The notes under the pieces are model-generated. The model saw nothing but the letters and a program-made list of their open reading frames with translations, was not told the origin of the DNA and ran no database searches. Shown piece by piece: positions 4,717 through 64,000 of a stretch of 64,000 nt of DNA (position 1 is the first letter of the stretch; each line of letters opens with the position of its first letter). The stretch comes from Eukaryota sp. TZLM1-RC. Lineage: Eukaryota; Protista; Metamonada: BaSk clade. Position numbers and translations under genes: made by a program. The DNA is taken from the NCBI GenBank assembly GCA_040285825.1, contig JAUPSS010000008.1:434001-498000 (forward strand). Direction: 5' to 3'.

Positions 4717-7120
4717 ATGATAAATGAAAAGAAAATCAAACTTCATAGGGAATTTTCCCATATTTTGCTAATTGATTGTTTAGCTACTTCTCCTCTGATA
4801 CAAAATTCGATTCAATATGGGTTTCATGATTGTATCCTCTGTCTGAAACTTTTCGTGCTGTTTCAGAAAGACAAATTTATTTTATCATCTTATAAAACCA
4901 TTCGAGCAACCGTCAACTCAATGGTTAAACATTCGAATGTGATACTCAAATTGAGAGAAACTGCTTTAAAATTTCAACAGTTACGTATTCACACCACATG
5001 TTGCTTAAAGCTGTATTTACAGTCTTGTTTTGAACGTAATTAGTCATTACCACGAATATCTGCCCAATTATATGAATCATTAATGGCCAGAATTCGCTAT
5101 ATTTCAGCTGAGTATTATGAAACAAGAAATGGTGAAACCAAAGAGTGCATTTCCACAGGATTTTGAAAACTTTGTTTATGGTGAAGGAGATTATAGATTA
5201 TCGACCACCTTTGAACAACAAAAGTTGAACAAAACATTGAGTTATTTAAACCATTTGAGATATAGACCTGAGTTTTTTCCACGATTTCCAACTGATGGAT
5301 TCAGTAGACCACCAGAGTATATGGCCCCAGTAATGTTTGCCAATTTTGAGAATAATTTGAAACTAAATTATGAAAAACATATTAATCGATTTATTAATGT
5401 TTACTTTGACAAAGTAGATGTGGAAAATGTGTTAGCAGAAATGCATAAGCTGGGTGGATACTCAACGCCATTATCTACTATAATTTCACTGTATGGATTT
5501 AGGCTTCGTCAATTCAAAAACTTGTTTTTAGTTGATGATAGAGATTGCTTGAGTTCTTTGTTTCATCATCCTGAAAATATTTCAGACCTTCTGAATGATG
5601 AATTTTACGATTTATGTGAACAACATGATATAAGAAGAAATGAACTCAGAGACATATTTGAAGGTCTTATTGAGCCATTCACTTGTCAAATTGAGAATTT
5701 GGTCACTGACGAGAATTTAGTTGACAACATATTCCCAGTGGATATACATTTTCTTGCAGACGCTGTGAAAACAGATCCTCAGTTATTCATAAAACCAGCA
5801 ATTACAATTGCCCAATATATCTCCAGTAGAGAGAAAAAACCTTATCATATTTCTCCTGTTTCAACCACTGTAGGCCCTGTATATTTTCCCATTGATACAA
5901 GAACACTATGGAGAATTGTTAAACAAACATTGATGGACGATTTATCATCTACACAGACGCTGAAAATGTCCAATACACTAGCCCAAATTACGAAATTCAA
6001 ACCACCTCAGCAATTTGACTTTTGGTCTAATATTCTCGATTTAAACCAACCAATGTTCAAACAGAAGAGCTATAAATTCAACAACATTATACACACAGAC
6101 GGATTTAATATTGCAGTAGAATTTGTTCGTCGGGATTTACAAGGTCAGAAATGTAAGCCAGAAAACAAGGCCAGTATTTCTGATTTATATATTGACGATG
6201 TTGATGTTGATGCTTTTCAAGACAAACGAATTGTTGTTTGTGATCCTGGAAAACGTGATTTATTGTATTTTGGGAGTAAAAAGACTGATCAAGAACTAGC
6301 CATGGTGCCTGAACATGAAACTGAACAGCAAAGAAATAGTCGGGTGATGAATCAAGACAAGAAGTACAAATGGTTGAGAATGACTCAGATGTCCTGGTCT
6401 TTGAAAAGTAAGATGAATGAAAAACAGAAACGATGGGCGACAAAGTATACTGAGGTAGGTTACGACAGGAACCAAATGATACAGTCTAACGAAATGACAA
6501 TTGAAGATGCAAACACCGAATTGTCCGCATTTGTTGCAAATTCGGCGACTTTTATAGACTTTTCCAACTTGGTGGTTGCCAAACTTCGGCAAGTTTTTTT
6601 GACAATTGACTTTTACAGTCTTGACTTGTGGAGCATTCATAAAATGCAAGCTTTCATTCACAAGCAAAAGGCTGAAAGCTGCTTGTTAAAAAGCCTTGTT
6701 CAGCAGTTTGGCAACCCAAAAAACACTTTAATACTGGTGGGTGATTATGGTAAAAAAGGTTCCAAGAATTTAAAACATCATAGGCCTACGCGAGGCATTC
6801 GATGGATTCAATTTCTGAAGAGAAATGGATTTGAAGTATTGATGATTAATGAAGCTTTCACTTCAGCAAAATGTCCTGTTTGTTTTGAAAAGGTTGCTAC
6901 GTTTTTGAGAGTAACAAATCCCAGATTCTATAGAAGAGAAAAGACTCCTGTTACTACATGTCATGGTTTAATAGCTTGCAACAGTGATAGTTGCAAACTC
7001 AGTAACAAAGGCTCAACAAAGCTTTTCAATAGAAATAAGCTGGCTTGTCTGAATATGTTTGCAATTGCAGAAGCCAGAATGAGTGGCAATGAAAGGCCTC
7101 AGTATCTGTGTAGTAGATAG
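4717..7120 (+). pseudogene. Fanzor1-like RNA-guided nuclease, family A copy 1, with one premature stop (start codon uncertain)
   Basis: IHTDG motif, RuvC-I VVCDPGKRD, GDYG, RuvC-II INEAFTS followed by CPVC, second Cys pair and NRNKLACLNM, terminal RPQYL; TAG at 5041..5043 where the paralog has TTG (54417..54419). Confidence 0.9.
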
Positions 7121-7176
7121 TTTTTGTAATTATTCCACACGAAAATTGATCGTGTATTTATGGGAATTTCCCACAG
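7121..7176 (+). ncRNA. Candidate Fanzor omegaRNA scaffold 3' part / element right end (family A copy 1); may begin inside the ORF
   Basis: Identical to 56496..56551, then abrupt divergence; stem ACACGA/TCGTGT and palindrome TGGGAA-T-TTCCCA; ends in CACAG. Confidence 0.65.
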
Positions 7177-7196
7177 TTGAATTTCTTTACAACATA

Positions 7197-8642
7197 ATGC
7201 ACCATAAAACCACTTCTCGACCTCAATTCAGCAGCACCGACATCTTTGTTGTAGGATTTGCACCATTTTTAATTGACACAGTCATAATTGAACCATCCAT
7301 ACAGTCCTCAGAGGTGTTGTCCTTCTTGCAGTCAAAAGTTCGTTTTCACCCACTCGAAACACATTTTAATCCTCATCTCCTCACGATTAAAGTCAATAGT
7401 AAAAATGAAGCACAGGAACTGTTAAACCTATCAGGTATACGATTCAAAGGCCAAAAGCTCAAGATCGGTCAAAGAACCAATTACTCTGCTCCTCTACCAC
7501 CCTCTGACTTCATTCTATCAGTTGCTTGTAGACTAACTCAACCTAGAGTTCGAAAGTTTCCACCTAACCTCACCTACACAGTGGTTGATCTCAGTGGAGT
7601 TGTCGATCAGAAGTCCTCTGATCCTTCCCAATGCTTCAACTCACCCACAGACTGTGCACATTTGTTTGAACAAGCCAAGGTTCTACCACATTTGGCCAGT
7701 GTCACCATGCTTCGACTGAACAAAAATTCTATTCAGACCCTTTCCTTCCTCAAGGATTCACAGTTCCTGAGTCTCTTCACTAACCTTGAATCACTGACAC
7801 TGGACAAGAATTACATAACCGACCCAGCCCACCTAGCATTCCCCCTGCCATTCCCTAAGTTAAAGACAATGTCGATTAAGGAGAATCCAATAGCTGTACA
7901 AAGTGTTATTCAAGTGAGTAACCAACATCATCGTGCTCAAATCATTGGTGACAAGGTTCCAAAGGTGTCTCCTCACCCAACCATGTCTACACCACCTGCT
8001 GCAGCCTCTATGAGTTCACTCTTTCAACACATGGAGGTTATAGCAGACTCTGACGAGTCCAGGGAGCAGGTTTTTCAGTTTCTAGATAAGTGGTACTCTG
8101 TGCTGAAACAACGTCAGGAACACCAACTAAAAACATTTTACTCACCCAGTGCAGCATGTGCGGTATCTCTTGACTCATTACCTCATCCCCAGAACCAGTC
8201 GTTTCAGTGTTTTGAATATGTTCCCCTGCCCTGCCCTGTTGACCAGCTGGTGTTTTGTCTTTGTAACATTACTTCAAGTATATCTTTTGATCCACGCACC
8301 CCTCTATCCGTTGCTATAAAGAAGGATGGTGGTAAGGTTCGGGTTATTTATGAAGGAGTTGTTAGTGGTGTAGCTGATGTCTTTTATCACCGAAGATTTG
8401 TTTTATCGAGTTCAGGATCCACTCCTCTGATTTCAGAGGATGTTTACCATTTGTGGAGTAGTAAAGGGATTACTGATCCGAAAAGGATGTTAGTGGCGAG
8501 AAGTGGGCTGAAAGATGAAATTGCTAGTGGTTGTTTACAGCTTTCTAATAATTCTGTGGATCTAGCTATGATTTACTTTATGAAAGAGTTTGTTCAAGGA
8601 AATGTTCAATTTAATCACTTTGTTATTTCTGGATCAAGTTAA
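7197..8642 (+). CDS. mRNA export factor NXF1/TAP/Mex67-like
   Basis: RRM-like segment, LRRs (LRLNKNSI, LTLDKNYI, MSIKENPI), NTF2-like segment (LKTFYSPSA...ISED) and TAP-C-like end (SGLKDEIASGCLQLSNNSVDLAMIYF); first ATG after the Fanzor end is 7197. Confidence 0.8.
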   Translation: MHHKTTSRPQFSSTDIFVVGFAPFLIDTVIIEPSIQSSEVLSFLQSKVRFHPLETHFNPHLLTIKVNSKNEAQELLNLSGIRFKGQKLKIGQRTNYSAPLPPSDFILSVACRLTQPRVRKFPPNLTYTVVDLSGVVDQKSSDPSQCFNSPTDCAHLFEQAKVLPHLASVTMLRLNKNSIQTLSFLKDSQFLSLFTNLESLTLDKNYITDPAHLAFPLPFPKLKTMSIKENPIAVQSVIQVSNQHHRAQIIGDKVPKVSPHPTMSTPPAAASMSSLFQHMEVIADSDESREQVFQFLDKWYSVLKQRQEHQLKTFYSPSAACAVSLDSLPHPQNQSFQCFEYVPLPCPVDQLVFCLCNITSSISFDPRTPLSVAIKKDGGKVRVIYEGVVSGVADVFYHRRFVLSSSGSTPLISEDVYHLWSSKGITDPKRMLVARSGLKDEIASGCLQLSNNSVDLAMIYFMKEFVQGNVQFNHFVISGSS

Positions 8643-8849
8643 ATAAAATAGTTTATGTTTCATGTGAATAATTCCTTATTTTGTCCGCAAGTTATTTTGT
8701 CGCTGGTCTTGGTACAGAACTCATTAGAAAAAAGCATGATATTTCAACTAAATTCCTTATTTTTTTTTATTTTTTTAAAATAATATTTATTTATTAAACA
8801 ACAAAAGGTCAACTCCAAATAGTCCATCTCTACCAAAAGGAAACAACAA

Positions 8850-9369: not shown

Positions 9370-9604
9370 GCTTCAACAAAGAGTAAAATGTTTAGATTTT
9401 AACAAATGAGTATTGGTGATTTAAATATTGTGAAACAAACAACTGTATGTTTTAAAGAATTACTTACCAAAATTGGCATCCGACTTAATTTATTTAAATG
9501 TGTTTTGTTATCGACTTCTCCAGTTTCCACAATAGTTGATGGTATTGAAATTCAAGCCAAATTATATTCAATTGATGCTTTTCGTCATTTGGGTTCGTTT
9601 TTAG

Positions 9605-23126: not shown

Positions 23127-24990
23127 ATGGATAACGTTCTACAAACTACAACTGTGGGAGCGTCTGTCAACCAGTTCTTCGACTCTGAGGCACAAGAAGC
23201 AATGGAACGCCAGTTCCAAGTTCTTGCTAGTATTGGAGCTCATGCTACTCACCTAGCACGACTCTTTGTGCTCCAATGTCCAGAACACTCTATGTGGCTT
23301 ACTCAAAGCCAGTTCTGGAGCCTCTGTTTCGACTTTGTTTGCCAAAGTGAGCCTAAACAAAGGAGGCCATTTGAAAACCATCCTTTGGTTTACCAAGCGC
23401 TACAACACCTTGTTCAGCACTTTTGGCCCTGGCGACCGCTGAATGAAACCACCTCAGCCGACGGTGGTAGATTTTGGTGTCTTTCCACTCTTCTTGGCAG
23501 TCGAGCCATCCAACTGCGAGAAGCCTTTTGTCAGTTGCTTGCTGACGGCTTTGTCTGGAAACGCAATTTTTTCAAAAGCTGTGCTCAGTTTCTAAATTGC
23601 CCCTGGCCCATGAAATACGCCGACTGTGTACTTCAAGGGATTCAGCCAGATGAGTCAATTTTACAATGGTATCAAGAAATACACCAGCATATCTTGGTCC
23701 ATTGGCTCAATATGACAGCCAACGCCTATATTGGTGGCCGTGAAAATTTGTTCGAAAATTCAATAAGAAACGAACGGTTTCCCATCAATATGGAGTTTGC
23801 TGCACCAATCGTTCAATCTGGCTTGAACATTTTATCTTTTTTAGAAGATAACTGCCCTGATGTGATGAAAAGGCACTCTCTCTCCACTGTCCAGTTGGTC
23901 TCCATGCTTCTGCAGCTTGACTAAAGAAGCAGAAGCTTATTTCACAAAACTCAATGCAAACAAAGAGCTTCTGAACAACCCTTATCGGTTTTTTAATAAA
24001 TCGAAATTTATTAACTATACCATTTTTTCGAATGGTGATTCCTTACGGTTTACGTTTACCCAGAAGGAAAGAAAAACTTATAATAGGCCAAATAAAGCGG
24101 AATTTGAGCCCAGGCGAGCCTCTGGAAATTATGATTTTCATAACTCTGAAAGGAAACGAAAATCCAATGTCCATAAAAGAGCAAATCCACAGAGAAGACC
24201 ACGATTACCAGTGGAACAACAGCCCAATTACGGAGATCCTGATGAAAATTTGTTTTTTGTAGCCATTGATCCCAACCACAGCAATCTTTGTGGTTGGACT
24301 GCTGGTTCTTTCCGATATTCTGCTACTGTTTTTGAACGTTCTGGACTGCTACTGAATCCAAAAGAACTATGACTAAATCACCATCCTCCTCTCACTCAAG
24401 CAACTCCTAACACTTATTCCGCTCAGAGCTTCCAAGAGTATCTGATTGAAATAAGTTTACCTTATGTTCCTGAATCTGAGGAAGAGCTTGAATATGCTTC
24501 AATTATGTCTGGAAATTTGCAGCGTGGTGCAAGAAAAAAGTTGAGAAGAAATAAGTTTGATTTCTTCATACGAAGACAAAAGAAACTAACTAGTTTTATT
24601 AACAAAATTAAACGCTTGTCTGAAGGAAGAAACACTATAGTTTGGTTCGGCAATGGCGGTGGTGGCCCCTCTCGTCAATCTGTGAAATCCCCCCGAAAGA
24701 GATTTCTCAAACAAATCAAAAAACACTTTGAAAGCGTCAAAGTCGGGGACGAGTTTAAGACCTCAGCAAAAGTGAATTGCTGTAAGGTCTTTCATAGAAA
24801 GATCTATCATGATGACGGAAGGGTAAATAACGCTAAGTTCGATTGCCCTCAATGTCAGACCAACTGGTCTAGGGACATCTCAGCCTCCAGAAACCAGCTG
24901 GAGATTGCAATTAGTGAGTATTTCACTGGTACTAGGCCAGAACCATTCAGAAGGCCAAGGCGTGTGAGACGTCTAAGAAGACAGCAGTAG
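23127..24990 (+). pseudogene. Fanzor-like nuclease, family B (about 620 aa; one frameshift, one in-frame stop)
   Basis: FSNGDSL motif, RuvC-I VAIDPN, FGNG, RuvC-II GDEFKTSAKVNCC, CPQC...SRDISASRN, terminal RPEPF; frameshift in CT run ~23880; TGA 24370..24372 in frame with ORF 24505. Confidence 0.88.
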
Positions 24991-26906: not shown

Positions 26907-27179
26907 TGCTAAAAAGGTTGCATAAAACAAAAGAATCCCAACTACTAAAAAAATTCTAAGAAAGCGATTTTCTGCCTGATGCGGGAAATTCGCATTACAC
27001 GATCTATTTTTGTGCGGAATAATTACAAAAACTATCTACTACACAGATATTCCAGGGCTCACATCCAATTAATTACAATCATTTTTGTTGATTATTGATT
27101 GGCTCTCCAAAATGTGTTTCATTAATACAAGAAAATCTATCGGTGTAAGTGAATCTTGCTTATTGTTTTCTTCATCCAC

Positions 27180-41009: not shown

Positions 41010-41150
41010 AAAAGTGTGAAAAAAGACTGCAAAACCAAGTAGAGGGTTGAAAACTTGCCAGAATAGGAAATCGAGAAATTACAAATGGGCTGACAAGTGT
41101 AAAATTTGACATATGAGCTCTTTATTGTCGCTTTATGTCAGACGTTCCTC
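41010..41150 (+). mobile_element. Diverged 5' leader of a family C-like Fanzor element
   Basis: Aligns with 60660..60785 (AAAACCAAGT.GAGGGTT.AAA, TGACAAGTGTAAAATTTGA, ATGAGCTCTTTATT, ATGTCAGAC). Confidence 0.7.
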
Positions 41151-43555: not shown

Positions 43556-43626
43556 ATTCATTTAGTCTTCATATTCCACTAATCTCAACTGATTACTGCT
43601 ATTTGACATTTTTGTACTATTAGCCG

Positions 43627-46480: not shown

Positions 46481-47339
46481 TCCCGAGGGTGTATAGTATC
46501 CCACCTGATTCACCTCTAATTCACCTTCCAACATGGAATCCTTTTCAACTCCTCTATTTACATATACACCTCTTTGTACTTTTGATGAATCAAACTTAGA
46601 CCTGCAACATCATGTCACCCCCCCCCCATCAAAAGCAGTGAACCAGCCAGTAGCTACCCCACTCCGAAGTGTCCCTGGTCTCTTCCACTGAATGCATGAC
46701 TCTTCATGCGGGATATGTTGAACATCTTCAGCAATTCTCCGTTTCTGTCATGAAACACAATATCAAGAACATTAAGCCATTGTCTGAGGTTATTGTGAAC
46801 CATTGGTTTTCATCAACAAGCGCCTGAACCAATGAAGCAATTTACGTTATTCAGGATCTATATAAAACCGACGAACTACAATGATTCTTACAAACCGTAA
46901 ATATTATTGACCATAATATCGATGCTGTTGATACATTTCATTGTGCTGATAGTATTTGTTGCATAAAATAAGTACAGATTTGTTTATTAAAAACATACAT
47001 ATCACATATCAAAACCTTTGGGAAAAGATTGAACAAGTGTCAACATTCAACAGAGTCTCATGATAGGGGAATGTGGCCTTACATTAATTTTGATCAGATG
47101 TGAATCAGAGGTGACTGGAATGGGAATGGGAATGGTGATTCACCAAACTTGCAATTCACAAAGGGATTCTGAGGAGGATTATTACTATACAAGTATAAAG
47201 TATAAGTATTCAACCAAACAGACAACCACAGGAAGGTCAATGGTGCGGAATTGAGCGCTGAACAAATGAAGAAGAAGGGTGGGAAACTTCGGTCACAGTT
47301 CACAAGTCCGTGTCAAGAAAAGAAATAGGGTAAAGAGTA

Positions 47340-47612
47340 CTGTGAATTTCACTTATCATGCATTCCCCTGTGAAATTCTCTCCTGTTTTCAACTTTCTCA
47401 ATTTCTACTCACAGGGTGTAAGAGACATGTAGCATCATTTGACAAAGACAATCATGATCTTCATCAATGGGCTACCTCACTTAAATACACCTACTGCATT
47501 CACAGAACAAAGCCTCGCGACTTGATGTATCTAAGTGGATCTACCAAATGCTACTAAGGTATTTGTAGATCGGTCTCAAAAGTTTTTGTTTCTGTATGCT
47601 CACGTTCCCTAT
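47340..47612 (-). ncRNA. Candidate omegaRNA scaffold / right end, Fanzor family C copy 1
   Basis: Reverse complement of 62732..63004; ends CACAG|TA (TA at 47338..47339). Confidence 0.72.
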
Positions 47613-49574
47613 TCATCTCCTCAGCAGAGCATCTGGGCAAATGTATCTTTCCGGCCACAATTCCGCTTTCTTCTTAATTTGAATATTTTTTTGCAGCGGA
47701 AATATCTCTGTCATATACTATTTGACACTCAGTACAAATACGCATCTGCCATGAGCCTGCTTGAATATTCTCGGCCATGCAACAACTTGACATTTTGCTT
47801 GTATTAAATTCACTGGTTGACAAGTGCTTCACGTCCTTTTGATAACACAACCATTTTCTGAAAGCCCTTGCTGATCCATATCGATTGACTTTTTCGGCAA
47901 TGAGAAGGGAAATTAGCAGAACCCACAGCAAGATAGAGTTTTTCAGGATGTCCAGCCAGACTTTGAAATTTGTTGAGACTCTCTCTGAACCGTCTCTCTT
48001 TTCGTCTGCGGTTAACAAATTTAATTATTTTCCATTTCTGGCGATTACTTTCCAAATACACTTTCCTCCTGACCAAATTCCAATGGTTCAAATATTGGTT
48101 GAAATTTTTGAACGGAATATTGGTTGGGAGAGTGTTTACTGGGTGAATTTTTTGTCATGTATCTTCTGCCAGTTGGACAAGGGATAACTCCACATTGATT
48201 ATCATTTAAGAAGTAACCACATAATCTTGATTGGCCAAGATCAACGCCGATAAGGGGCCTTTCAGGTAAAATTTCGACTGGATGTCTACGTCTTCGACGG
48301 GGCATTTTTTTAGTACCCTTCAACTGTGTTTCTCTGGTTTTGTTGGCATTAGGGTCACTTTTCATTTCATTTTTGATCTTCTTTTTCTTTTTCGGTGGTT
48401 CATCCAGCTCATCTGTGTTTTTCTGAGTCATTATTTTTTACCTTCAAAGGTCAAAAGCAGTTCATTACCATTAGTTTTCAATAAAATTTTGTTAAATCTA
48501 TTTTTCAAACTTTTTTCTGTTGATATTGAATTTTTGGTAAGGACATTGTTTGAATACTCGTTTCAGACATGTATTTTTGATAAACTTTGTTTTGGAAGAT
48601 GATCCTTCAATAATTGGAAATTTTTTTCACAGAGTGGAAAATTTGTGAAGGTACCTCAATAAATTTAGAACCTTTATGAGAAGCTAAAGGTATTATTCTA
48701 AATTTCTTCCAGCAATGCATATGAGAAAAGAAAGTGAGTAAGTATTGTGAAATTTTAAGATTGAAGAGAAAAAGCTCACTAATTTCCTTTGATGAAAAAG
48801 TGATTTTATCATGTGAGGACAGTAGGGAGGCAGTGGTAGGAAATCTTTGAAAGAGATTCAAGATAAACCTACATGCATTCAATAAAAAAAATCTTTCTCT
48901 TGAATTATTCAAATTGAAATTGATGAGGTATTCAAGAACAGAATCAACTACTACTTCCTCGGGTTGGGCTAGTAGTTCATCTGGCAAAAGTGAAAGAATA
49001 TTATTTGCAAAGACATTTGTTTTATTCAGGGCTCTACAATGAGCACGAATAAAGTTTTTTGTCCAGGATTGACAAATTTTGGGTAAACATGTCTTAACGT
49101 TGGAGGCCAATTGACGAGCACGACAGGCAAGATAAGAAGAAAGCCCTTTTCTATTGATAAAATTACAGTTCTGGGACTGCAGCCAATCATTGAGGAAAAG
49201 ATGGAATGAATTTCTGTAAGGCACTAAAGAATTTTCCCACACAGAAACAAGAGACCTGTCTTGTGGGCATTCAGGAAGAAATCCATTGTAAAGATATGGA
49301 GTAATTGGCGTTGGCCTTTAGATGTGGAAGGCTTTGGAAAAGAACCAGTGGTGATGACGGTCATAAACAGATACCATACATCCTGTTCCACTAAACCTCT
49401 TGATGCCAACGGAAAATTTAGAAGAAAAGATTGAAGTAATAAAGACGCTTCATGACAAATCTCGGTGACCACAGGAAGGTCAGTCCGAATTTGTTGCACC
49501 GCTACGAGGGTCAGCAGCGAGTTAAGTGCACAAGACCGAGTGAATACACGTGATACAGAGGGGGTGTCTGACAT
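47613..49574 (-). pseudogene. Fanzor-like nuclease, family C copy 1 (frameshifts mostly at homopolymers)
   Basis: RuvC-I IGVDLG, RuvC-II TSEFNTSKMSSCC, CTEC...DRDISAA; near-identical to 60772..62731. Confidence 0.88.
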
Positions 49575-49830
49575 GTAGTGAGAATAAAGAGCTCATCTAT
49601 CAAATTTTACACTTGTCACCCATTTTCGACTTCTGGTTGCCTATTCTGGGAGGTTTTTAACCCTCAACTTGGTTTTGGGAGGTTTTCACTATTCCCACAC
49701 TTTTCCCTCACTTTCCATTTACTTTGTAAGAATTCTCCAACTGAGTAGTTCAGCATCTCAGTTCATTTTATCCACGTCCTCCATTAATCTCAACAGGTTA
49801 CCACTGTTTGACGTTTTGTGTTATTAGCCG

Positions 49831-50718
49831 ATGTCTAAACTCAATTCTTTACAAACCAAGGTGATTCAGCTTAAACACACAATCACTACTTATCAAAACT
49901 ACTGCAAATCACATAATCTTCCTCTTCCACAAGTAAGTGATGTATTTTTCGCTCCAGACACACTCCAGAAGGTTTCAAATGCGTTCTCGCTTCGTTCTGA
50001 TCTCAATGACCTTCGCCATGATATCAATGCAGAACTTACCTCAATTGAATCTCAACTACAGTCCTCTCTTTCCCTTACTCTGTCGTCTCTACACTCTCAT
50101 GATGCGCACATATCACAACTTAACCAAGAAATGAGCAGTGTTCAATCACTAAACCAGCAACTTGAGTGTGAAGTATCTAAATTAAATGAAACTACTCAAT
50201 CTCAGTGTCTGCAGCTTTCCGAACTTGAAAATGATTTGATTGAAAAGGAAAGGTTAATAACTGAGCTGAAAAGCAATCACGATGGCAAGGCGGTCAACCA
50301 ACAGTTAGAGTTGGTTAATTTACAATCGCAAGTTTCTGATCACCAATCAACAATGTCTAAACTGGAAACTGAAATTTCAAAGTTAAGATTCCGAAATTCC
50401 CAGTTAATGTCTGAAATTAATGAAAAGGATTTGGAATTAACTAATCAAGTGGCTGAAAATAATATTTTAGAAACTGAATTTCAACAAATTCAAAAGGAAG
50501 CGCAAAATTACAAAAGTCAGTTGAATTCAGCAGAAACACGTGTCACTGAGCTGTTCTCTGAGCTGACAAGTGTCAAGTCTCAGCTGACAAATATTTGTAG
50601 TTCAAAGGACGCGGAATGGATTGAAAAACTTGAAAATTATAAAGATGAGTGGAAGAAGAGCTCAGAAAAGGATCAGTTATTACTGAAGAGACAATTAGAA
50701 TCAACAGAAAAGAATTAG
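49831..50718 (+). CDS. Coiled-coil protein, probably 3'-truncated by a LINE fragment
   Basis: Heptad-rich 295-aa ORF; stop abuts an L-B fragment at ~50720..50850. Confidence 0.7.
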   Translation: MSKLNSLQTKVIQLKHTITTYQNYCKSHNLPLPQVSDVFFAPDTLQKVSNAFSLRSDLNDLRHDINAELTSIESQLQSSLSLTLSSLHSHDAHISQLNQEMSSVQSLNQQLECEVSKLNETTQSQCLQLSELENDLIEKERLITELKSNHDGKAVNQQLELVNLQSQVSDHQSTMSKLETEISKLRFRNSQLMSEINEKDLELTNQVAENNILETEFQQIQKEAQNYKSQLNSAETRVTELFSELTSVKSQLTNICSSKDAEWIEKLENYKDEWKKSSEKDQLLLKRQLESTEKN

Positions 50719-51184
50719 AATCAACTCAGCCTTGTCTAAGTGGCCATTAGAACTAACTAAGACATCTTCACAGTAAATTGAAGCAAAAGAATCAACAGTA
50801 GTAAAGTCAACAACAACCTGAGAAGAATCCACCAAAGGAGCAATTGGATAACCACAACCACTACTTTTTATTACTATTACTTTTTTGTTCGGTGGTACGA
50901 TGGTGCGTTTGGTATAACATTGTTTTTGTTTGGTGCGCACTCAATTATAGCGACATTAGTTTTAAACAATTTGTATTGTCCAATAAAACTTTTGACAGAT
51001 TTGTTTTTTCCAATAAAAGAATAAAAATAGAACACCAATCCTTCCTTAAGTTGAAGTAAATTGACATCAGAAAAAAAATGATCGGTGTTAAACGGCATGG
51101 ATTTTGAGAATTGGGAATGGGGTGGGAATGGGAATGGGAATGGCAATTCACCAATTTTGCAAAATACTGTAAGATTTGCTTTCC

Positions 51185-51521
51185 ATGGTTGCCAAAGATC
51201 TTGCACTGCTGCTGATATCTCCAACCACAACCACTACAATCAGGTCTTATTTTTCAAATTTGACTCCCGAACAGTATTTATCATATTATGGGATACCAGA
51301 ACTTCTCACAGAAGGTGCCACAGAGGCACTACTTAAACGACCTTCCCCAGTACTGCCGTCCTTAGCTTCCTTTTTCAACACATCCACTGATTATCGTGAC
51401 ACCTTGGACACGGGAATTCCTTCAGGCATGACTACTAGAGGAAGATACTTGCGTACTATTTTTAGCAAGTTTTCTCTTGAGAAACGACAGTATTCCCTTT
51501 TTGCTACAGACTGGACCCAAC
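51185..51521 (+). pseudogene. Truncated duplicate of the host gene at 58456..59154, fused to gypsy sequence
   Basis: Identity ends after ...GACCCAAC (51521), then gypsy CCTCAAGCCG. Confidence 0.88.
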
Positions 51522-54092
51522 CTCAAGCCGCATGCTGATGGGATTGACTGTCCTCCTATGGAGATCAACTTTCATGATGAAAGTATTCGAGTGAGACGAC
51601 CCCCTCACAGATTAAACCCCGAGAAGCAGAAAGTCGCCGAACAGATCTTCGATGAACTCGTCGAGTCTGGATTTGCTGTACCATCGAACCATAAGTTCAG
51701 TTCTCCAGTATGTCTTGTGGTATAGCCTGATCATCGTAAACCTCGCCGTACTGGTGATTACAGCGGCAAATACGGAGTCAACGCCAACACTGTTCCTGCT
51801 TAACCTAATCTCCCTAGAATCTCCGATGTTCTAGTCTTCCTTTCGGAAGCTAATTTCATCAATACCCTTGACCTCCCCAAAGCCTTTTGGCAACTAAAAA
51901 TTGCAGAAAAGGACTAGGAGAAGACTGCCTTAAGCATTTCTGGCAAAAGTATCATGTTTAAACGTGCTGCTTTTGGCCTCAAGAACGTTCCTGCAGTTTT
52001 TCAGAACGTTATGGCAGACATCTTCTCCGGAGACGGTGTATTCATCTATATAGATGACATCATTATAGTAGGTAGAACTTTCAACGAGTTCCTCGGACGT
52101 CTAAGATGTGTCTTCGAGCAGGCTCGAACCCGTAGAGTTAGCCATGGACTGCCCAAGTGCCATTTTGTGTACTCGAGACACCCAATAAAGATCCTTGGTA
52201 GCAGATTCTTCATTTTTGGACAAAAAAATTTCTGATCCAGAATTTTTAGAAAATCACGATGAAAACAAAGTTTGTTCAAAAACGAAGCCACGCTCCTATA
52301 GATGCTCAAAGTGTCGACAACAAGGACATAATCCTCGAACATGCCCCAATGTTGGAAAAAATGATGTGACAAATTCTGAAACAAAATGTAAAAGACAATT
52401 TATTAGAAGAAAAGAGTCTAAGGTAGAACCAATAAATGATTCTCCACAAGTTGTTGCAAAACCAGTTAACAATCGATTCAAGTACAAAACTTGCAACAAT
52501 TGTGAAAATTTCTTTTAGAAAAAATGCAAAAGGAAAAACGGCTGATCGATGCTTGAAATGCCGCATAGTTGATAACTACCATCCTTCCATAAAAATACCT
52601 CAAGAAATTCATCCGTCAAAATGCAATGAATTTGCTTTCGTTTTTAAAAGATTTTTGGATCAATTATGTAAAGGAAAGTATGCTATCAATATTCTTTGGG
52701 AATTTTTTGGTTCTTTAGAAATGGTTTAAAAATGGTTTAAGAAAAAACAATGAAAAGATTTGATATTTATTTATGGCGTTCTCGGATTCAATTTGCCATT
52801 ATTAATAGATTACCTCGGTTTTTCAATCGAATAAGTGATGCTTTAGCTAGACAGCAAGCAGATCAAGATGTTGTAGAGGAAATCTTGGTTCAATGATAGT
52901 CGTCCCATTAGTTATGAGTTAATTTAATTAAGTGTGCAAATTCAATAAATACAAATATAAATCCATTTATCATTCTGTGGTTTTCATTTGAAATGCCATT
53001 AATAATATATGCAGCTCGGCTGTTTTAAATCAAGATCTTCACTCATTGTTATTGGAAAAGGGTGTTTGTGAAAACAAGTCGTCAATTTCTTCACTTTTTG
53101 TAACCATTGTACCACGAAGATTTGGATTGTGTGCCACTAATGAAGCATTTGTAACAAAAATGAGATTATATTTGAACATCCCCATTAATCAATTATTATC
53201 AAAAGAAAAATGTATTTGTTCGAATTCACCTCAACTCACTTTGCGCCATGCTCTGAATTGCTCTGAATTGATAACTTATCGTTCTTCATTACATGATGCT
53301 GTTAGAGACACTGTTTTCAATATGGCACAAACTGCAAGGATATCGTGTATCAAAGAGCTCCTGCTGAAGGAAACGCTTTCTCTGAATAATTTTGGTTCTG
53401 ATGATAGAGGTGATGTATACTGTGATTGGATTGATAATACTGAAACTATTGTTGACTTTGTCTCATGTAATGTTGCAAATGATATTTTGGTTCACAGAAG
53501 AAAACTTAATCCTGTGGCTGCTCTGGATTTTAAAGCAAAAGAGAAACATAGAAAATATGATAAAGAAATTGAAGATGCAAATGTTGATAGAAATACACAG
53601 CTGGTTTTTATTGCTTTCCCATTTTCGATAAATGGAAGATTATCAGTTGAAGCAGAATTTTTTTTGGATGACTCCAAAAAAATGGTGAAAGAAAAAACAA
53701 TGAAAAGATTTGATATTTTTTTATGGCGTTCACGGATTCAATTTGCCATTATTAATAGATTACCGCGGTTTTTCAATCGAATTAGAGAAGCTTTAGCTAG
53801 ACAGCAAGCAAATCAAGATTTTGTAGAGGAAATCTTGGTTTAATGATAGTCGTCCCATTAGTTATGATTTAATTTAATAAAGTGTGCAAATTCAATAAAT
53901 ACGATATTATTTTGATTTAGCATTTCCCACTGTTCGAGATGATTCAGCAATTGATGTACTCAATCAACTTTCACCGAGATGGAGAGAAGTTGTCATCAGG
54001 GAAAATGGCTTTTTCTTTTAGATACTTGGGTTTTTGCCAAAAAATTCATAAAAATACCCTACGGACATGGGTTAGGCAATCTGGCATATAAA

Positions 54093-56495
54093 ATGATAAA
54101 TGAAAAGAAAATCAAACTTCATCAACAATTCACCAATATTTTACCTGTTGATTGTTTAGCTACTACTCCACTGAGACAAACTTTAATTCAATATGGGCTT
54201 CAAGATTGTTCACTATGTCTGAAACTTTTCGTGTTGTTTCAGAAAGATAAGTTTGTTTTACCATCTTATAAAACCATTCGAGCAACCGTCAACTCAATGG
54301 TTAAACATTCAAATGTTATACTCAAAATGAAAGAAATTGCTTCAAAATTTCAACAGTTACGAATTCATACTACTTGTTGCTTAAAGCTGTATTTACAATC
54401 CCGATTTGAACGTAATTTGCCACTACCACGAATTTCTGCCAAACTATATGAATCATTAATGGCCAGAATTCGTTACATTTCAGATGATTTTTATGAGCAA
54501 CAAATGGTAAAGCCTAAAAGTGAAATTCCACAGGATTTGGAAGATTTTGTTTATGGTGAAGGAGATTATAATTTATCAACTACCTTTGAACAACAAAAGT
54601 TAAACAAAACTTTAAGTTATCTTGATCACTTGAGACACAGGCCTGAATACTTCCCACGATTTCCAACAGATGGATTCAGTCGACCACCTGAGTATATGGC
54701 CCCAGTTATGTTTGCAAATTTTGAGAATAATTTGAAATTAAATTATGAGAAACATATTAATCGCTTTATTAATGTGTATTTTGACAAAACAGGTGTGGAA
54801 AATGTGTTAGCAGAAATGCACAAGCTAGGTGGATACTCAACGCCATTATCTACCATTATTTCACTATATAGATTTAGGCTTCGTCAATTCAAAAACTTGT
54901 TTTTAGTTGATGATAGAGATTGCTTGAGTTCTTTGTTTCATCATCCTGAAAATATTTCAGACCTTCTGAATGATGAATTTTACGATTTATGTGAACAGCA
55001 TGATATAAGAAATAATGAACTTAGAGACATATTTGAAGGTCTTATTGAGCCTTTTACTTGCCAAATTGAGAATTTGGTCACTGACGAGAATTTAGTTGAT
55101 AACATATTTCCAGTGGATATACATTTTCTTGCAGACACTGTTGAAAAAGATCCACAAATATTTCTAACACCAGCAATTACAATTGCCCAATATATCTCCA
55201 GTAGAGAGAAAAAACCTTATCATATTTCTCCTGTTTCAACCACTGTAGGCCCTGGATATTTTCCCATTGATACAAGAACACTATGGAGAATTGTTAAACA
55301 AACATTGATGGACGATTTATCATCTACACAGACGCTGAAAATGTCCAATACACTAGCCCAAATTACGAAATTCAAACCACCTCAGCAATTTGACTTTTGG
55401 TCTAATATTCTCGATTTAAACCAGCCAATGTTCAAACAGAAGAGCTATAAATTCAACAACATTATTCACACAGATGGATTTAATATTGCAGTAGAATTTG
55501 TTCGTCGGGATTTACAAGGTCAGAAATGTAAGCCAGACAACAAGGCAAGTATTTCTGATTTATATATTGATGATGTTGATGTTGATGCTTTTCAAGACAA
55601 ACGAATTGTTGTTTGTGATCCTGGAAAACGTGATTTATTGTATTTTGGGAGTAAAAAGACTGATCAAGAACTAGCCATGGTGCCTGAACATGAAACTGAA
55701 CAGCAAAGAAATAGTCGGGTGATGAATCAAGACAAGAAGTACAAATGGTTGAGAATGACTCAGATGTCCTGGTCTTTGAAAAGCAGGATGAATGAAAAAC
55801 AGAAACGATGGGCGACAAAGTATACTGAGGTAGATTACGACAAAAACCAAATGATAGAGTCTAACGAAATGACAATTGAAGATGCAAACACCGAATTGTC
55901 CGCATTTGCTGCAAATTCGGCGACTTTTATAGACTTTTCCAACTTTGTGGTTGCCAAACTTCGGCAAGTTTTTTTGACAATTGACTTTTACAGTCTTGAC
56001 TTGTGGAGCATTCATAAAATGCAAGCTTTCATTCACAAGCAAAAGACTGAAAGTTGGTTGTTAAAAAGCCTTGTTCAGCAGTTTGGCAACCCGAAAGACA
56101 CTTTAATACTAATGGGTGATTATGGTAAAAAAGGTATTAAAAATTTGAAACATCAGAGACCTACTCGAGGCATTGGATGGATTCAATTTCTGAAAAGAAA
56201 TGGATTTGAAGTATTGATGATCAATGAAGCTTTCACTTCAGCAATATGTCCTGTTTGTTTTGAAAAGGTTGCTACGTTTTTGAGAGTAACAAATCCCAGA
56301 GTGTATAGAAGAGAAAAAACTCCTGTTACTACATGTAATGGTTTATTAGCTTGTAATAGCGAGAGTTGCAAACTCAGTAACAATGGCTCAGCAAAGCTTT
56401 TCAATAGAAATAAGCTGGCTTGTCTGAATATGTTTGCAATTGCTGAAGTCAGAATGAGTGGTAATGAAAGGCCTCAGTATCTGTCTAGTAGATAG
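54093..56495 (+). CDS. Fanzor1-like RNA-guided nuclease, family A copy 2, uninterrupted ORF (up to ~800 aa; start uncertain)
   Basis: IHTDG; D at 55617 (CDPG), E at 56226 (INEAFTS), CPVC/CNSESC zinc finger, NRN at 56403..56411, RPQYL. Confidence 0.92.
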   Translation: MINEKKIKLHQQFTNILPVDCLATTPLRQTLIQYGLQDCSLCLKLFVLFQKDKFVLPSYKTIRATVNSMVKHSNVILKMKEIASKFQQLRIHTTCCLKLYLQSRFERNLPLPRISAKLYESLMARIRYISDDFYEQQMVKPKSEIPQDLEDFVYGEGDYNLSTTFEQQKLNKTLSYLDHLRHRPEYFPRFPTDGFSRPPEYMAPVMFANFENNLKLNYEKHINRFINVYFDKTGVENVLAEMHKLGGYSTPLSTIISLYRFRLRQFKNLFLVDDRDCLSSLFHHPENISDLLNDEFYDLCEQHDIRNNELRDIFEGLIEPFTCQIENLVTDENLVDNIFPVDIHFLADTVEKDPQIFLTPAITIAQYISSREKKPYHISPVSTTVGPGYFPIDTRTLWRIVKQTLMDDLSSTQTLKMSNTLAQITKFKPPQQFDFWSNILDLNQPMFKQKSYKFNNIIHTDGFNIAVEFVRRDLQGQKCKPDNKASISDLYIDDVDVDAFQDKRIVVCDPGKRDLLYFGSKKTDQELAMVPEHETEQQRNSRVMNQDKKYKWLRMTQMSWSLKSRMNEKQKRWATKYTEVDYDKNQMIESNEMTIEDANTELSAFAANSATFIDFSNFVVAKLRQVFLTIDFYSLDLWSIHKMQAFIHKQKTESWLLKSLVQQFGNPKDTLILMGDYGKKGIKNLKHQRPTRGIGWIQFLKRNGFEVLMINEAFTSAICPVCFEKVATFLRVTNPRVYRREKTPVTTCNGLLACNSESCKLSNNGSAKLFNRNKLACLNMFAIAEVRMSGNERPQYLSSR

Positions 56496-56551
56496 TTTTT
56501 GTAATTATTCCACACGAAAATTGATCGTGTATTTATGGGAATTTCCCACAG
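56496..56551 (+). ncRNA. Candidate omegaRNA scaffold 3' part / right end, family A copy 2
   Basis: Identical to 7121..7176; ends CACAG|TA. Confidence 0.68.
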
Positions 56552-56673
56552 TAATTAGTTATTCAAAAAAAACCTCACGTTTGTTTCAAACCTCACTTTG
56601 ATTACACTGTCTTTTTAGTTGACTGACCCACCTTATTACACCATAGTTATTAAACTGTCACTTACTCTCTTTC

Positions 56674-59154: not shown

Positions 59155-59169
59155 GGAAAGCAAATCTTA

Positions 59170-59290: not shown

Positions 59291-59627
59291 TCAACTTAAG
59301 GAAGGATTGGTGTTCTATTTTTATTCTTTTATTGGAAAAAACAAATCTGTCAAAAGTTTTATTGGACAATACAAATTGTTTAAAACTAATGTCGCTATAA
59401 TTGAGTGCGCACCAAACAAAAACAATGTTATACCAAACGCACCATCGTACCACCGAACAAAAAAAGTAATAGTAATAAAAAGTAGTGGTTGTGGTTATCC
59501 AATTGCTCCTTTGGTGGATTCTTCTCAGGTTGTTGTTGACTTTACTACTGTTGATTCTTTTGCTTCAATTTACTGTGAAGATGTCTTAGTTAGTTCTAAT
59601 GGCCACTTAGACAAGGCTGAGTTGATT

Positions 59628-60516: not shown

Positions 60517-60771
60517 CGGCTAATAACACAAAACGTCAAACAGTGGTAACCTGTTGAGATTAATGGAGGACGTGGATAAAATGAACTGAGATGCTGAACT
60601 ACTCAGTTGGAGAATTCTTACAAAGTAAATGGAAAGTGTGGGAAAGTGTGGGAATAGTGAAAACCTCCCAAAACCAAGTTGAGGGTTAAAAACCTCCCAG
60701 AATAGGCAACCAGAAGTCGAAAATGGGTGACAAGTGTAAAATTTGATAGATGAGCTCTTTATTCTCACTAC

Positions 60772-62731
60772 ATGTCAGACACCCCCTCTGTATCACGTGT
60801 ATTCACTCGGTCTTGTGCACTTAACTCGCTGCTGACCCCTGCAGCGGTGCAACAAATTCGGACTGACCTTCCTGTGGTCACCGAGATTTGTCATGAAGCG
60901 TCTTTATTACTTCAATCTTTTCTTCTAAATTTTCCGTTGGCATCAAGAGGTTTAGTGGAACAGGATGTATGGTATCTGTTTATGACCGTCATCACCACTG
61001 GTTCTTTTCCAAAGCCTTCCACATCTAAAGGCCAACGCCAATTACTCCATATCTTTTACAATGGATTTCTTCCTGAATGCCCACAAGACAGGTCTCTTGT
61101 TTCTGTGTGGGAAAATTCTTTAGTGCCTTACAGAAATTCATTCCATCTTTTCCTCAATGATTGGCTGCAGTCCCAGAACTGTAATTTTATCAATAGAAAA
61201 GGGCTTTCTTCTTATCTTGCCTGTCGTGCTCGTCAATTGGCCTCCAACGTTAAGACATGTTTACCCAAAATTTGTCAATCCTGGACAAAAAAACTTTATT
61301 CGTGCTCATTGTAGAGCCCTGAATAAAACAAATGTCTTTGCAAATAATATTCTTTCACTTTTGCCAGATGAACTACTAGCCCAACCCGAGGAAGTAGTAG
61401 TTGATTCTGTTCTTGAATACCTCATCAATTTCAATTTGAATAATTCAAGAGAAAGATTTTTTTTATTGAATGCATGTAGGTTTATCTTGAATCTCTTTCA
61501 AAGATTTCCTACCACTGCCTCCCTACTGTCCTCACATGATAAAATCACTTTTTCATCAAAGGAAATTAGTGAGCTTTTTTCTCTTCAATCTTAAAATTTC
61601 ACAATACTTACTCACTTTCTTTTCTCATATGCATTGCTGGAAGAAATTTAGAATAATACCTTTAGCTTCTCATAAAGGTTCTAAATTTATTGAGGTACCT
61701 TCACAAATTTTCCACTCTGTGAAAAAATTTCCAATTATTGAAGGATCATCTTCCAAAACAAAGTTTATCAAAAATACATGTCTGAAACGAGTATTCAAAC
61801 AATGTCCTTACCAAAAATTCAATATCAACAGAAAAAGTTTGAAAAATAGATTTAACAAAATTTTATTGAAAACTAATGGTAATGAACTGCTTGTGACCTT
61901 TGAAGGTAAAAATAATGACTCAGAAAACACAGATGAGCTGGATGAACCACCGAAAAAGAAAAGAAGATCAAAAAGTGAAATGAAAAGTGACCCTAATGCC
62001 AACAAAACCAGAGAAACACAGTTGAAGGGTACTAAAAAAATGCCCCGTCGAAGACGTAGACATCCAGTCGAAATTTTACCTGAAAGGCCCCTTATCGGCG
62101 TTGATCTTGGCCAATCAAGATTATGTGGTTACTTCTTAAATGATAATCAATGTGGAGTTATCCCTTGTCCAACTGGCAGAAGATACATGACAAAAAATTC
62201 ACCCAGTAAACACTCTCCCAACCAATATTCCGTTCAAAAATTTCAACCAATATTTGAACCATTGGAATTTGGTCAGGAGGAAAAGTGTATTTGGAAAGTA
62301 ATCGCCAGAAATGGAAAATAATTAAATTTGATAACCGCAGACGAAAAGAGAGACGGTTCAGAGAGAGTCTCAACAAATTTCAAAGTCTGGCTGGACATCC
62401 TGAAAAACTCTATCTTGCTGTGGGTTCTGCTAATTTCCCTTCTCATTGCCGAAAAGTCAATCGATATGGATCAGCAAGGGCTTTCAGAAAATGGTTGTGT
62501 TATCAAAAGGACGTGAAGCACTTGTCAACCAGTGAATTTAATACAAGCAAAATGTCAAGTTGTTGCATGGCCGAGAATATTCAAGCAGGCTCATGGCAGA
62601 TGCGTATTTGTACTGAGTGTCAAATAGTATATGACAGAGATATTTCCGCTGCAAAAAATATTCAAATTAAGAAGAAAGCGGAATTGTGGCCGGAAAGATA
62701 CATTTGCCCAGATGCTCTGCTGAGGAGATGA
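60772..62731 (+). pseudogene. Fanzor-like nuclease, family C copy 2 (about 650 aa if homopolymer frameshifts are corrected)
   Basis: LKTNGNEL, RuvC-I IGVDLG, AVGSA, RuvC-II TSEFNTSKMSSCC, CTEC, RuvC-III DRDISAAKNI; D-E-D triad present. Confidence 0.9.
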
Positions 62732-63004
62732 ATAGGGAACGTGAGCATACAGAAACAAAAACTTTTGAGACCGATCTACAAATACCTTAGTAGCATTTGG
62801 TAGATCCACTTAGATACATCAAGTCGCGAGGCTTTGTTCTGTGAATGCAGTAGGTGTATTTAAGTGAGGTAGCCCATTGATGAAGATCATGATTGTCTTT
62901 GTCAAATGATGCTACATGTCTCTTACACCCTGTGAGTAGAAATTGAGAAAGTTGAAAACAGGAGTGAATTTCACAGGGGAATGCATGATAAGTGAAATTC
63001 ACAG
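62732..63004 (+). ncRNA. Candidate omegaRNA scaffold / right end, family C copy 2 (273 nt)
   Basis: Consecutive hairpins 62773..62806, 62807..62866, 62869..62915, 62928..62978 (alternative 62964..63002), with G-U pairs on the sense strand; ends CACAG|TA. Confidence 0.75.
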
Positions 63005-63006
63005 TA

Positions 63007-63389
63007 ATACCAGTTAATTTTCCACCCATTCAATTTTTGTTGGTAATAAATCATTCTCCTCATCAACAGGTTTCACTGCTGCTTTCATCAATGGTTGGTG
63101 AAAAACACATTTCATCAATATGCAAACAAGTAGAACCACAAGAGAATGAACCAAGTTTCTACAGTATTGACAAGTTTAGTTGAGTGTAATTATGTTTTGC
63201 ATTCCACTTTGAACTCCTTTCCATTTTCTGAGTTCTTTATTGCTCAATATGTTTCACAACTTTGATTTTCTTGGGAACACGATGATATGATACTTGAGGC
63301 ATAAGATAACAAGAGTAAGGAGTAATTTTATTAGATTTCACTCGCTATCACTAGTGAAGTCTATTACACACTAGAGTAATTGTCCACAG
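63007..63389 (-). mobile_element. Left end and decayed N-terminus of a probable Fanzor element (family E), cut off by the family C right end
   Basis: TA|CTGTGGACAATTA at 63389, ATG at 63302, then MPQVSYHRVPKKIKL*NILSNKEL, loosely similar to Fanzor1 N-termini. Confidence 0.45.
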
Positions 63390-63769
63390 TACAACACTAG
63401 CTTTTCCCCCTCTTTCATCTCAAAAGACAGCTATGAGAATTGAGCAATAAGAATTGAGCAGGTTCTTGAGCAATAAACTTTTATTGGATTTCACATCTTC
63501 AATGAGAAAAGGGTTCAGCTAAACATCACTCACTTATTAATAACAATTGTAGACCAACGGTATTGTAAAGGCTAGTGAGTGATTGAAGAGAAAGTTTAGA
63601 GTGGTATTTAATCAATAATCATCTATAGAAACACGCATTGTTTGAGTTAGCAAAATTGAAACAAAATGTTTATAAAACTATCCAACATTGAGGAATTGGA
63701 TCCCTATTCGTTATAACTACTATTAATTTGATAATAAATTAGCTATAATTCTTTGCTAATGTTGAGCCA

Positions 63770-64000
63770 TAGAGAGATTTGAAGTAAAATTAATAAATAA
63801 TGGATAAATAAGTTTCACAAAATAGCATTGTAGTGATGGGTGATAAAAGCAAACCAATTTTAAGCATAAAGCACCTACAAAGAATGTTGGTTATCGAAAG
63901 GTGTTTAAAAACCGTAACTTCCGTCTATTACTGGATAATTATATAACTAGTCCTCGATGTCATGCATGTGTACGCAAGGGGAAAGAAGGTGAAAAAGTAA
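63770..64000 (+). pseudogene. Second family D Fanzor remnant; runs off the window end
   Basis: Nucleotide match to 43128..43365 (VVMGD..HKAPTKNVGY..LLDNYITS..CHACVRKGKEGEKV). Confidence 0.85.

Follow-up and report, generated by a model that had tools for sequence, protein, structure and literature searches.

The subject of this report is a 64,000-nucleotide stretch of contig JAUPSS010000008.1 (positions 434,001 to 498,000; the window) from the genome of the free-living protist TZLM1-RC, a metamonad (Skoliomonas). The window is rich in transposons and crowded with broken copies of genes for Fanzors, the eukaryotic RNA-guided nucleases: four families of the Fanzor1 type are present, and Fanzor-derived DNA makes up about 14.1 kb, or 22% of the whole. 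One of them, family A, corresponds to the 3' portion of a skoliomonad-specific fusion gene, which is longer and has the order short leader, 2A motif, basic linker, PolB-type 3'-5' exonuclease, Fanzor1 (catalytic triad D-E-N) and a conserved right end of 55-70 nt. TZLM1-RC, which we take to be S. litria, is a skoliomonad metamonad, as are TZLM3-RCL and GEM-RC1. The names GEMRC and Skoliomonas litria appear in bioRxiv 2023.05.03.539051.

The Fanzor-related features of the window are listed below.

4519..7177, plus strand: family A copy A1, 5'-truncated within the exonuclease domain; stop codon 7118-7120.
Sites of A1, plus strand: ExoIII motif 4816, Fanzor1 start 4891, TDG 6095, DPG 6239, shifted Glu 6845, NRN 7025.
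Lesions of A1, plus strand: in-frame stop 5041, frameshift near 5120.
7121..7174, plus strand: conserved right end of A1, with two hairpins, a candidate scaffold of an omegaRNA; beyond it, the variable flank is a candidate guide.
53896..56552, plus strand: family A copy A2, 5'-truncated, with a 1-nt deletion at 54009 and the ExoIII motif at 54192.
54267-56495, plus strand: open Fanzor1 frame of A2, with TDG 55470, DPG 55614, shifted Glu 56220 and NRN 56400.
56496..56549, plus strand: conserved right end of A2, candidate omegaRNA scaffold.
26980..27049, minus strand: solo family A right end (70 bp) lacking any coding sequence; it lies upstream of a RING-finger gene at a distance of 74 nt.
23127..24990, plus strand: family B Fanzor1-like gene, triad D-E-D (DPN 24265, shifted Glu 24748, RD 24865).
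Lesions of family B, plus strand: frameshift near 23890-23920, in-frame stop 24370.
60634..63005, plus strand: family C copy C2, coding part 60772-62731, with four +1 homopolymer frameshifts.
Sites of C2, plus strand: TNG 61872, DLG 62100, shifted Glu 62531, RD 62630.
62732..63005, plus strand: family C 3' tail, candidate omegaRNA, about 274 nt, strongly structured.
47339..49713, minus strand: family C copy C1, coding part 49574-47613, an inverted copy of C2 that has eight insertions or deletions (indels) of 1 nt in homopolymers.
42200..43626, plus strand: family D Fanzor1 remnant, with Asn at 43295 (shifted-Glu site) and 43463 (RuvC-III).
63767..64000, plus strand: another remnant of family D, cut off by the edge of the window, with Asn at the shifted-Glu site.
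49762..49830, plus strand: degenerate D-type tail, flush with the ATG of the open reading frame (ORF) at 49831; a duplicate lies at 60517-60585 on the minus strand.
47338..56552, no strand: two-headed composite, whose outer borders are Fanzor right ends.
41030..41143, plus strand: diverged relic of the family C left end and start codon, 82-84% identical to C.
63528..63648, plus strand: relic of a 3' end, probably from a fifth Fanzor family; it matches the tail of a Fanzor remnant at locus L003 with 71% identity.

The window holds relics of four or five Fanzor1-type families. Coding sequence of the Fanzor type was found at every place where an earlier note, made from the letters of this DNA alone, had reported it, and the families, as claimed there, cannot be aligned as DNA (blastn, word size 7, E<0.01; 0 of 6 pairs matched). 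Family A almost certainly belongs to Fanzor1, matching PpFz1 at E 3.5e-24 and SpuFz1 at E 1.7e-21. Its two copies have TDG in the WED domain (6095 and 55470), the RuvC-I motif DPG (6239 and 55614), Gly at the canonical Glu site and a shifted Glu (6845 and 56220) six residues ahead of the zinc finger. The RuvC-I Asp, the Gly and the shifted Glu had been described correctly; the residue at RuvC-III is Asn instead of Asp, a departure from the layout as stated. The same C-terminal layout had been ascribed to all four families; the shifted Glu was confirmed for A, B and C, and family D has Asn both there and at RuvC-III. The note also counted the rearranged RuvC among Fanzor1 traits, whereas the shifted Glu is common to Fanzor1, Fanzor2 and pro-Fanzor TnpB, and only TDG and the REC insertions, of which TDG had been named, are specific marks of Fanzor1 (PMC10711439).

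Families B and C (about 600-800 aa; PF07282 above the cut-off, broken frames having been searched in separate pieces rather than as joined models) both have D-E-D triads, with DPN, shifted Glu and RD in B and DLG, shifted Glu and RD in C. TDG is replaced by SNG and TNG, respectively. Comparison with a Fanzor1 profile gave hhalign probabilities of 96.8% for B and 96.2% for C; for C, whose AlphaFold model reached a pLDDT of only 28.6, this comparison was with a Fanzor1 profile only. The two families are similar to each other as proteins (E 6e-8) and form long branches in the tree. Since they have SNG/TNG and DPN/DLG instead of the exact TDG and DPG, they are best called divergent, and on their sequences both are probably divergent Fanzor1. 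Family D matches PpFz1 at E 2e-15, and its triad is lost: Asn stands at the shifted-Glu site in both remnants and at RuvC-III, and the RuvC-I region is decayed. The two D remnants are 87% identical, with Asn at the shifted-Glu site at 43295 and 63931. Family D may represent a nuclease-dead Fanzor family rather than random decay. As to the fifth family, the 71% match comes from L003 4050-5416, where a further Fanzor1 family has left a remnant whose shifted Glu and RD are canonical. The expectation of an expanded repertoire is borne out by clusters at 90% identity with 42 members (family A) and 27 members (family C N-termini) in the genome, and that of an uncharacterised one agrees with our finding, in the literature searched, no paper naming both 'Skoliomonas' and 'Fanzor'. 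The cluster itself is real, but taken alone it only adds members to a known kind, from a lineage sequenced recently.

The feature that matters most is the fusion of which family A forms part. Starts at 4717 and 54093 had been proposed for the two copies; both are 5'-truncated, at 4519 and about 53900, within an exonuclease domain that was missed. They begin between the ExoII and ExoIII motifs, so only ExoIII is kept. Family A proteins match those of 'Eukaryota sp. TZLM1-RC' at 87-96%. The kin of A2 comprise such close relatives in TZLM1-RC and more distant ones (36-47%) in TZLM3-RCL and GEM-RC1. Fusion kin are present in all three skoliomonad genomes, with the same junction in at least five subfamilies, and several of the longer kin carry PF03104 ahead of the Fanzor part (E down to 3e-16). 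Four separate loci of TZLM3-RCL have single frames without interruption, of 1194, 1194, 1194 and 1308 aa; intact natural copies include KAL0221350.1 and KAL0220299.1. In TZLM1-RC, loci L002 and L010 contain everything from ExoI through Fanzor, and L003 has the 2A motif and Fanzor. Tandemly arrayed units of about 1.32 kb, 99.4% identical, interrupt a family A copy at L002 7721-13107.

The AlphaFold model of a full-length kin protein (pLDDT 76) shows the WED/REC/RuvC/TNB fold, including the REC insertions of Fanzor1, in agreement with the TnpB-type fold proposed earlier. Its residues 381-1118 superpose on PpFz1 with Z 25.7 over 585 residues and on SpuFz1 with Z 24.4, and residues 107-378 resemble the exonuclease domains of Pol alpha, epsilon and II (Z 18-19, best 18.9); the two domains abut. 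The exonuclease profile is nearest to yeast Pol delta (E 8e-10). Full-length kin have ExoI DxE, ExoII NxxxFD, ExoIII YxxxD and an RNase H-like fold, as in the DEDDy group, and ExoI DxE, ExoII NxxxFD and the Asp of ExoIII are kept across subfamilies of about 30% identity. Among intact copies, the ratio of nonsynonymous to synonymous substitution rates (dN/dS) lies at 0.15-0.22 in the exonuclease and at 0.17-0.22 in Fanzor; for the Fanzor parts of A1 and A2 it is 0.18. Judging by these ratios, purifying selection is acting on both domains. The fusion clade is monophyletic within Fanzor1 (SH-aLRT 98) in a tree from an IQ-TREE quick search with SH-aLRT support only and no Fanzor2 or TnpB outgroup, ignoring the partly out-of-frame row E_L003.

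Nearly the whole fusion clade has Asn instead of Asp as the third catalytic residue. The triad D-E-N is active in GtFz1, and the D606N change raises the activity of SpuFz1 (PMC11423790), so Asn at RuvC-III is no bar to Fanzor1 membership, and the idea that family A is dead for this reason was rejected. The exonuclease and RuvC are both likely to be active in intact copies. In the TZLM3-RCL loci L001, L004 and L005, leader and linker are identical between copies and the exonuclease and Fanzor parts are 2-4% apart, which suggests gene conversion among these copies.

The possibility was considered that all this is an ordinary graveyard of decayed Fanzors and that the fusion arose as a chance in-frame join or an artefact of gene models. 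The window copies are indeed all broken, and the leaders are variable and resemble captured junk. Uninterrupted genomic frames at several loci, the junction common to three genomes and at least five subfamilies, and an exonuclease dN/dS of about 0.2 largely refute this view, which is hardly credible now. It is highly probable that the exonuclease-Fanzor fusion is real and under selection.

Upstream of the fusion, behind variable leaders, lies the motif D-V-E-A-N-P-G-P. In the form D(V/I)ExNPGP it occurs in frame at seven loci (L001, L003, L004, L005, L006, L016 and L017) in both TZLM genomes and is absent from the 5'-truncated copies of the window. By predicted ribosome skipping, the 2A sequence would release the exonuclease-Fanzor protein from the variable leader. 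One subfamily has two Ulp1/SENP8-like protease domains inserted after 2A, as in P0198, a gene model with one called intron, which consists of 2A, two Ulp1 domains, exonuclease and Fanzor.

Among all proteins compared, including the best 150 of 1,204 matches from 1.84 billion representatives, the exonuclease profile matched only members of the fusion clade, all of them skoliomonad where the source is known. Alignment of the exonuclease junction with metagenome and viral contigs gave no relative outside skoliomonads, pattern scans of these being insensitive. With the C-terminal part, five ordinary metagenomic Fanzor1 loci were found (Asp at RuvC-III where it could be read, no exonuclease match). 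Viral contigs gave no match to this part and no relatives of families B and C, again with insensitive pattern scans. The word 'exonuclease' is absent from the text of the core Fanzor papers and a 2026 review, and in targeted literature searches only engineered exonuclease-nuclease fusions were found; most subscription literature lay outside these searches. A natural exonuclease-Fanzor fusion was not found described in the literature covered, and it is well supported as a new Fanzor1 variant. The described Fanzors compared here are stand-alone RuvC nucleases, and the fusion demonstrates that end processing has been taken up by an OMEGA nuclease of eukaryotes; in Cas9, Cas12 and Fanzor, it has been added by engineering, with mixed success. 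The fusion also offers a direct test of what a Fanzor does for its element, homing or mobilisation, because exonuclease-dead and RuvC-dead variants predict different outcomes.

The ends of the elements bear on their mode of spread. Family A copies have in common 54-57 nt after the stop codon, ending in a hairpin, and the flanks then diverge; right ends generally agree to within a few bases and left ends vary between copies. In both A and C, the right end has a terminal hairpin. The right end of family A has no Rfam match. The family C right end is identical in four copies, and its 274-nt tail folds with a z-score of -3.4. In the loci read, there is no terminal inverted repeat (TIR), the left boundaries having no match to the right end in inverted orientation, and no linked transposase. 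These findings do not fit a TIR (DDE) transposon carrying Fanzor, which would have TIRs, a target-site duplication (TSD) of fixed length and a linked transposase. In a null test, target duplications were significant at 2 of 17 ends, both of family C (L008, 13 bp, p 0.003; L009, 11 bp, p 0.03). They begin at the first base past the right end, and these copies carry 5' cargo.

A D-end sequence of about 75-90 bp occurs at 43557-43633, 49762-49837 and 60510-60585 and at L008 6930-7027. The D tail and two degenerate copies end flush with the ATG of unrelated host ORFs, all with Met-Ser starts; perhaps this flush sequence is an element end directed at start codons, or else a leader that the ORFs have in common.

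Every Fanzor copy of the window is truncated or frameshifted, and several were copied together with neighbouring DNA. The segment 47338-51521 is an inverted copy of 58818-63006 (99.3% identical; about 4.2 kb with C and host-gene cargo), and 51521-56552 is a copy of 1663-7177 (retroelement fragments and A). These halves of the composite meet at 51521 via a microhomology of 2-3 nt. Its outer borders are the right ends of two different Fanzor families, and both read CACAG, then TA. Four of the loci reported in the earlier note come therefore from two source loci: the dense four-family cluster described there is real, but its density is inflated by C1/C2 and A1/A2 being copied units. The cargo of the C unit includes two host genes, antisense to C. 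Between A1 and A2, the cargo is 98% identical and the Fanzor parts only 93.5%, in a patchy manner, and this sequence pattern points to recombination of the Fanzor parts with other A copies.

The open A2 and a consensus of family C had been put forward as the best candidates for activity. The Fanzor part of A2 is open, with the D-E-N triad, and the 838-aa ORF containing it starts at an ATG out of the native frame owing to the 1-nt deletion at 54009; being truncated as well, A2 was rejected as an intact gene and is, as it stands, the C-terminal remainder of a fusion protein that was longer. Eleven one-base indels, 10 of them in runs, distinguish C1 from C2, and one further indel, the +1 frameshift at C2 62236, is common to both. 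No mix of the two copies can thus be open, and the two-copy consensus, whose D-E-D residues were correctly predicted, was rejected as an open frame and, as it stands, is not supported as the best candidate. Compared with other copies, 11 of 12 C indels are +1, which suggests long-read error; the alternative is slippage in repair synthesis.

A Fanzor would be expected to express and bind an omegaRNA and to cleave DNA under RNA guidance, dependent on a target-adjacent motif (TAM). On balance, with somewhat better than even confidence, we consider a stretch with relics of Fanzor1-type families, one of them the tail of an exonuclease-Fanzor fusion, to be the best overall explanation; within it, trimming of DNA ends for copying is only the likeliest role of the exonuclease. 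The right end and its flank would form the omegaRNA, as in SpuFz1 and GtFz1, and RuvC would cut guide-matching DNA next to a TAM, at a distance of 14-21 nt from that motif. Homing or copying would require removal of the bases at the broken 3' end that mismatch the donor junction, which is why the tethered exonuclease is favoured as the trimmer. It would act on 3' ends at the cut like Pol delta in break-induced replication; in yeast, the exonuclease of Pol delta chews back invading 3' ends in this process (PMC9477423). The trimmed end would prime copying from the donor, the right end of the element first and then leftwards for a variable distance, and the outcome would be homing and one-ended copies with cargo. 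Such trimming for copying is in keeping with right ends that are precise and left ends that are ragged, with the cargo, with the junction by microhomology and with copies that are mosaics. That the exonuclease would be a built-in end trimmer, so that copying by repair synthesis could start at the right end of the element, is by this analogy a tentative proposal, held with rather less than even confidence.

Several observations weigh against it. Families C and D show the right-end-first pattern without any exonuclease, so the exonuclease is not required for it, and non-autonomous Helitron2-Fanzor elements show the same end pattern (PMC3627910). The right flanks of family A are mutually dissimilar, whereas strict guide-directed insertion predicts likeness. 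The tail of family A has no compensatory base changes among six close copies, and its single-sequence folding z-scores are only -1.2 to -1.8. Target duplications in the exonuclease clade are weak or absent (best p 0.07); general TSDs were rejected there, the apparent 8-12 bp matches not being significant in the null test. ExoIII is altered in two subfamilies, with His for Asp in GEM-RC1 and no Tyr in P0005. Finally, an engineered fusion with the T5 (5') exonuclease lowered SpuFz1 editing (PMC13434818).

Some of these points lead to non-autonomous one-ended rolling-circle elements of the Helitron2 type, mobilised by HUH/RepHel in trans, with Fanzor serving ordinary homing or copy maintenance and with exonuclease, Ulp1 and 2A as captured accessory modules that help in this or are separately useful. 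Helitrons capture protease domains. The pattern of CRe-1/2/3 (intact 3' ends, 5' truncations, 5' captured DNA, TSDs of 7-19 bp) resembles the one seen here, where TSDs were significant at two family C ends, and the terminal hairpins of the A and C right ends fit as well. Neither the scanned ORFs of the window nor the called genes of 12 skoliomonad loci include RepHel, however; neither the window nor those loci showed a CTRR end, a 5' hairpin or an asymmetric TIR, and the right-end sequence differs between subfamilies. We regard this as the most serious competitor, although an unlikely one.

The precise 3' ends, the 70-bp solo 3' end and the 11-13 bp TSDs could also result from retroposition, in which an abundant non-LTR (long terminal repeat) element free of poly(A) would reverse-transcribe Fanzor transcripts from their structured 3' end. 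This would yield 5' truncation, variable TSDs and head-to-head double insertions, with 2A and Ulp1 coming from a non-LTR donor. Reverse transcriptase (RT) fragments are abundant, and 2A-like motifs are known at the N-termini of non-LTR ORFs (PMC3708506). The C cargo with two antisense host genes would, on the other hand, need a long antisense read-through transcript; the copies have no tails; and the omegaRNA would end in a flank-derived guide, yet the flanks are mostly left behind. Retroposition appears quite improbable.

The exonuclease might, alternatively, have no role in copying and either trim the guide RNA (the omegaRNA 3' end) or turn the cut into deletions that destroy competing elements. 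RNA trimmers are found among DEDD-fold enzymes, yet the domain found here is of the DNA-specific PolB proofreading type. Destructive cutting would suit a genome crowded with other elements, and in engineered fusions, a 3'-5' exonuclease makes deletions larger and prevents re-cutting (PMC8904484, PMC13545839); none of the guide flanks examined, however, had a significant match to another element. This explanation seems unlikely, somewhat more so than the Helitron2 one.

The strongest form of the trimming proposal, a transposase-free RNA-guided mobile element whose exonuclease-Fanzor protein cuts and trims for itself while host repair copies the element right-end first with cargo, is a long shot, only slightly less improbable than retroposition. 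If true, it would mean a eukaryotic element that spreads by an RNA-guided nuclease alone and a natural editor combining nuclease and end processing, and target choice by the guide seed would account for the flush position of D-type ends at the start codons of three unrelated Met-Ser ORFs.

In the rest of the window, repeats are abundant, with a gypsy-type polyprotein and many non-LTR fragments, and host genes are few. The gypsy-type polyprotein (10684-16743) is open and comprises 2019 aa with protease, RT, RNase H and integrase; it is flanked by 159-bp direct repeats (9603-9761 and 16836-16994) and has a partial relative at 1-2343. The 3' halves of non-LTR retroelements occur at 3138-4038, 16992-18466, 32303-33796, 37956-38770 and 53000-53901, are mutually 85-93% identical and stop near AATAAA without a poly(A) tail; one of them adjoins the truncated 5' end of A2. 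A DDE_3 (IS630/Tc1-like) fragment at 46145-46516, about 800 bp off the left border of the composite, was rejected as a cognate transposase, being unlinked and matched only at E 1e-4.

A Mex67/NXF1-like host gene (7200-8642; RRM_9 and LRR) begins 22 nt past the right end of A1, so that the candidate guide of A1 is the leader of that gene. The other host genes are a TRAFD1/XAF1-like zinc finger (33798-34757), a Na/Ca exchanger (36580-38076), a RING finger (26106-26930) and a protein kinase (56674-58345) divided over two ORFs by an intron or a frameshift. A 714-aa ORF without Pfam match (43627-45771) immediately follows the D tail. Weak coiled-coil Pfam matches on ORF 49831, including Bacillus HBL at E 0.04, were dismissed as noise.

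Compared with known systems, family A and its kin are closest to the Fanzor1 proteins PpFz1, SpuFz1 and GtFz1 (Saito 2023, Xu 2024), with which they have in common the WED/REC/RuvC/TNB fold (Z 20-26), TDG, DPG, the shifted Glu and a short conserved right end, and the D-E-N triad is that of GtFz1. They differ in an identity of only 19-26% in structural alignment and in the addition of a PolB exonuclease at the N-terminus, a 2A motif and, optionally, Ulp1 domains; Spu-1 has inverted repeats of 30 nt, whereas no TIRs were found in family A elements. The Chlamydomonas elements CRe-1/2/3 (Bao and Jurka 2013) are alike in the intact hairpin 3' end, 5' truncation, 5' captured DNA and, at two family C ends, variable TSDs; unlike them, the skoliomonad elements show no cognate Helitron ends or RepHel, appear to have intron-poor genes and bear the exonuclease fusion, which may explain the TSD-flanked one-ended Fanzor insertions left unexplained by those authors. 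The 2A motifs of the APE-type non-LTR elements Ingi, L1Tc and CR1/L2 likewise read D-V-E-x-N-P-G-P after a short leader, although in skoliomonads 2A precedes Ulp1 or exonuclease-Fanzor and not APE-RT. The exonuclease resembles that of Pol delta in fold (Z about 18-19) and in motifs ExoI, ExoII and ExoIII, yeast Pol delta being the best profile match, yet the fusion has no polymerase domain, and the exonuclease is joined directly to the first WED strand of Fanzor. The engineered Cas9-TREX2, T5-CasMINI and T5-SpuFz1 also tether an RNA-guided nuclease to an end-processing exonuclease, while the skoliomonad fusion is natural, under selection and built with a PolB-type domain.

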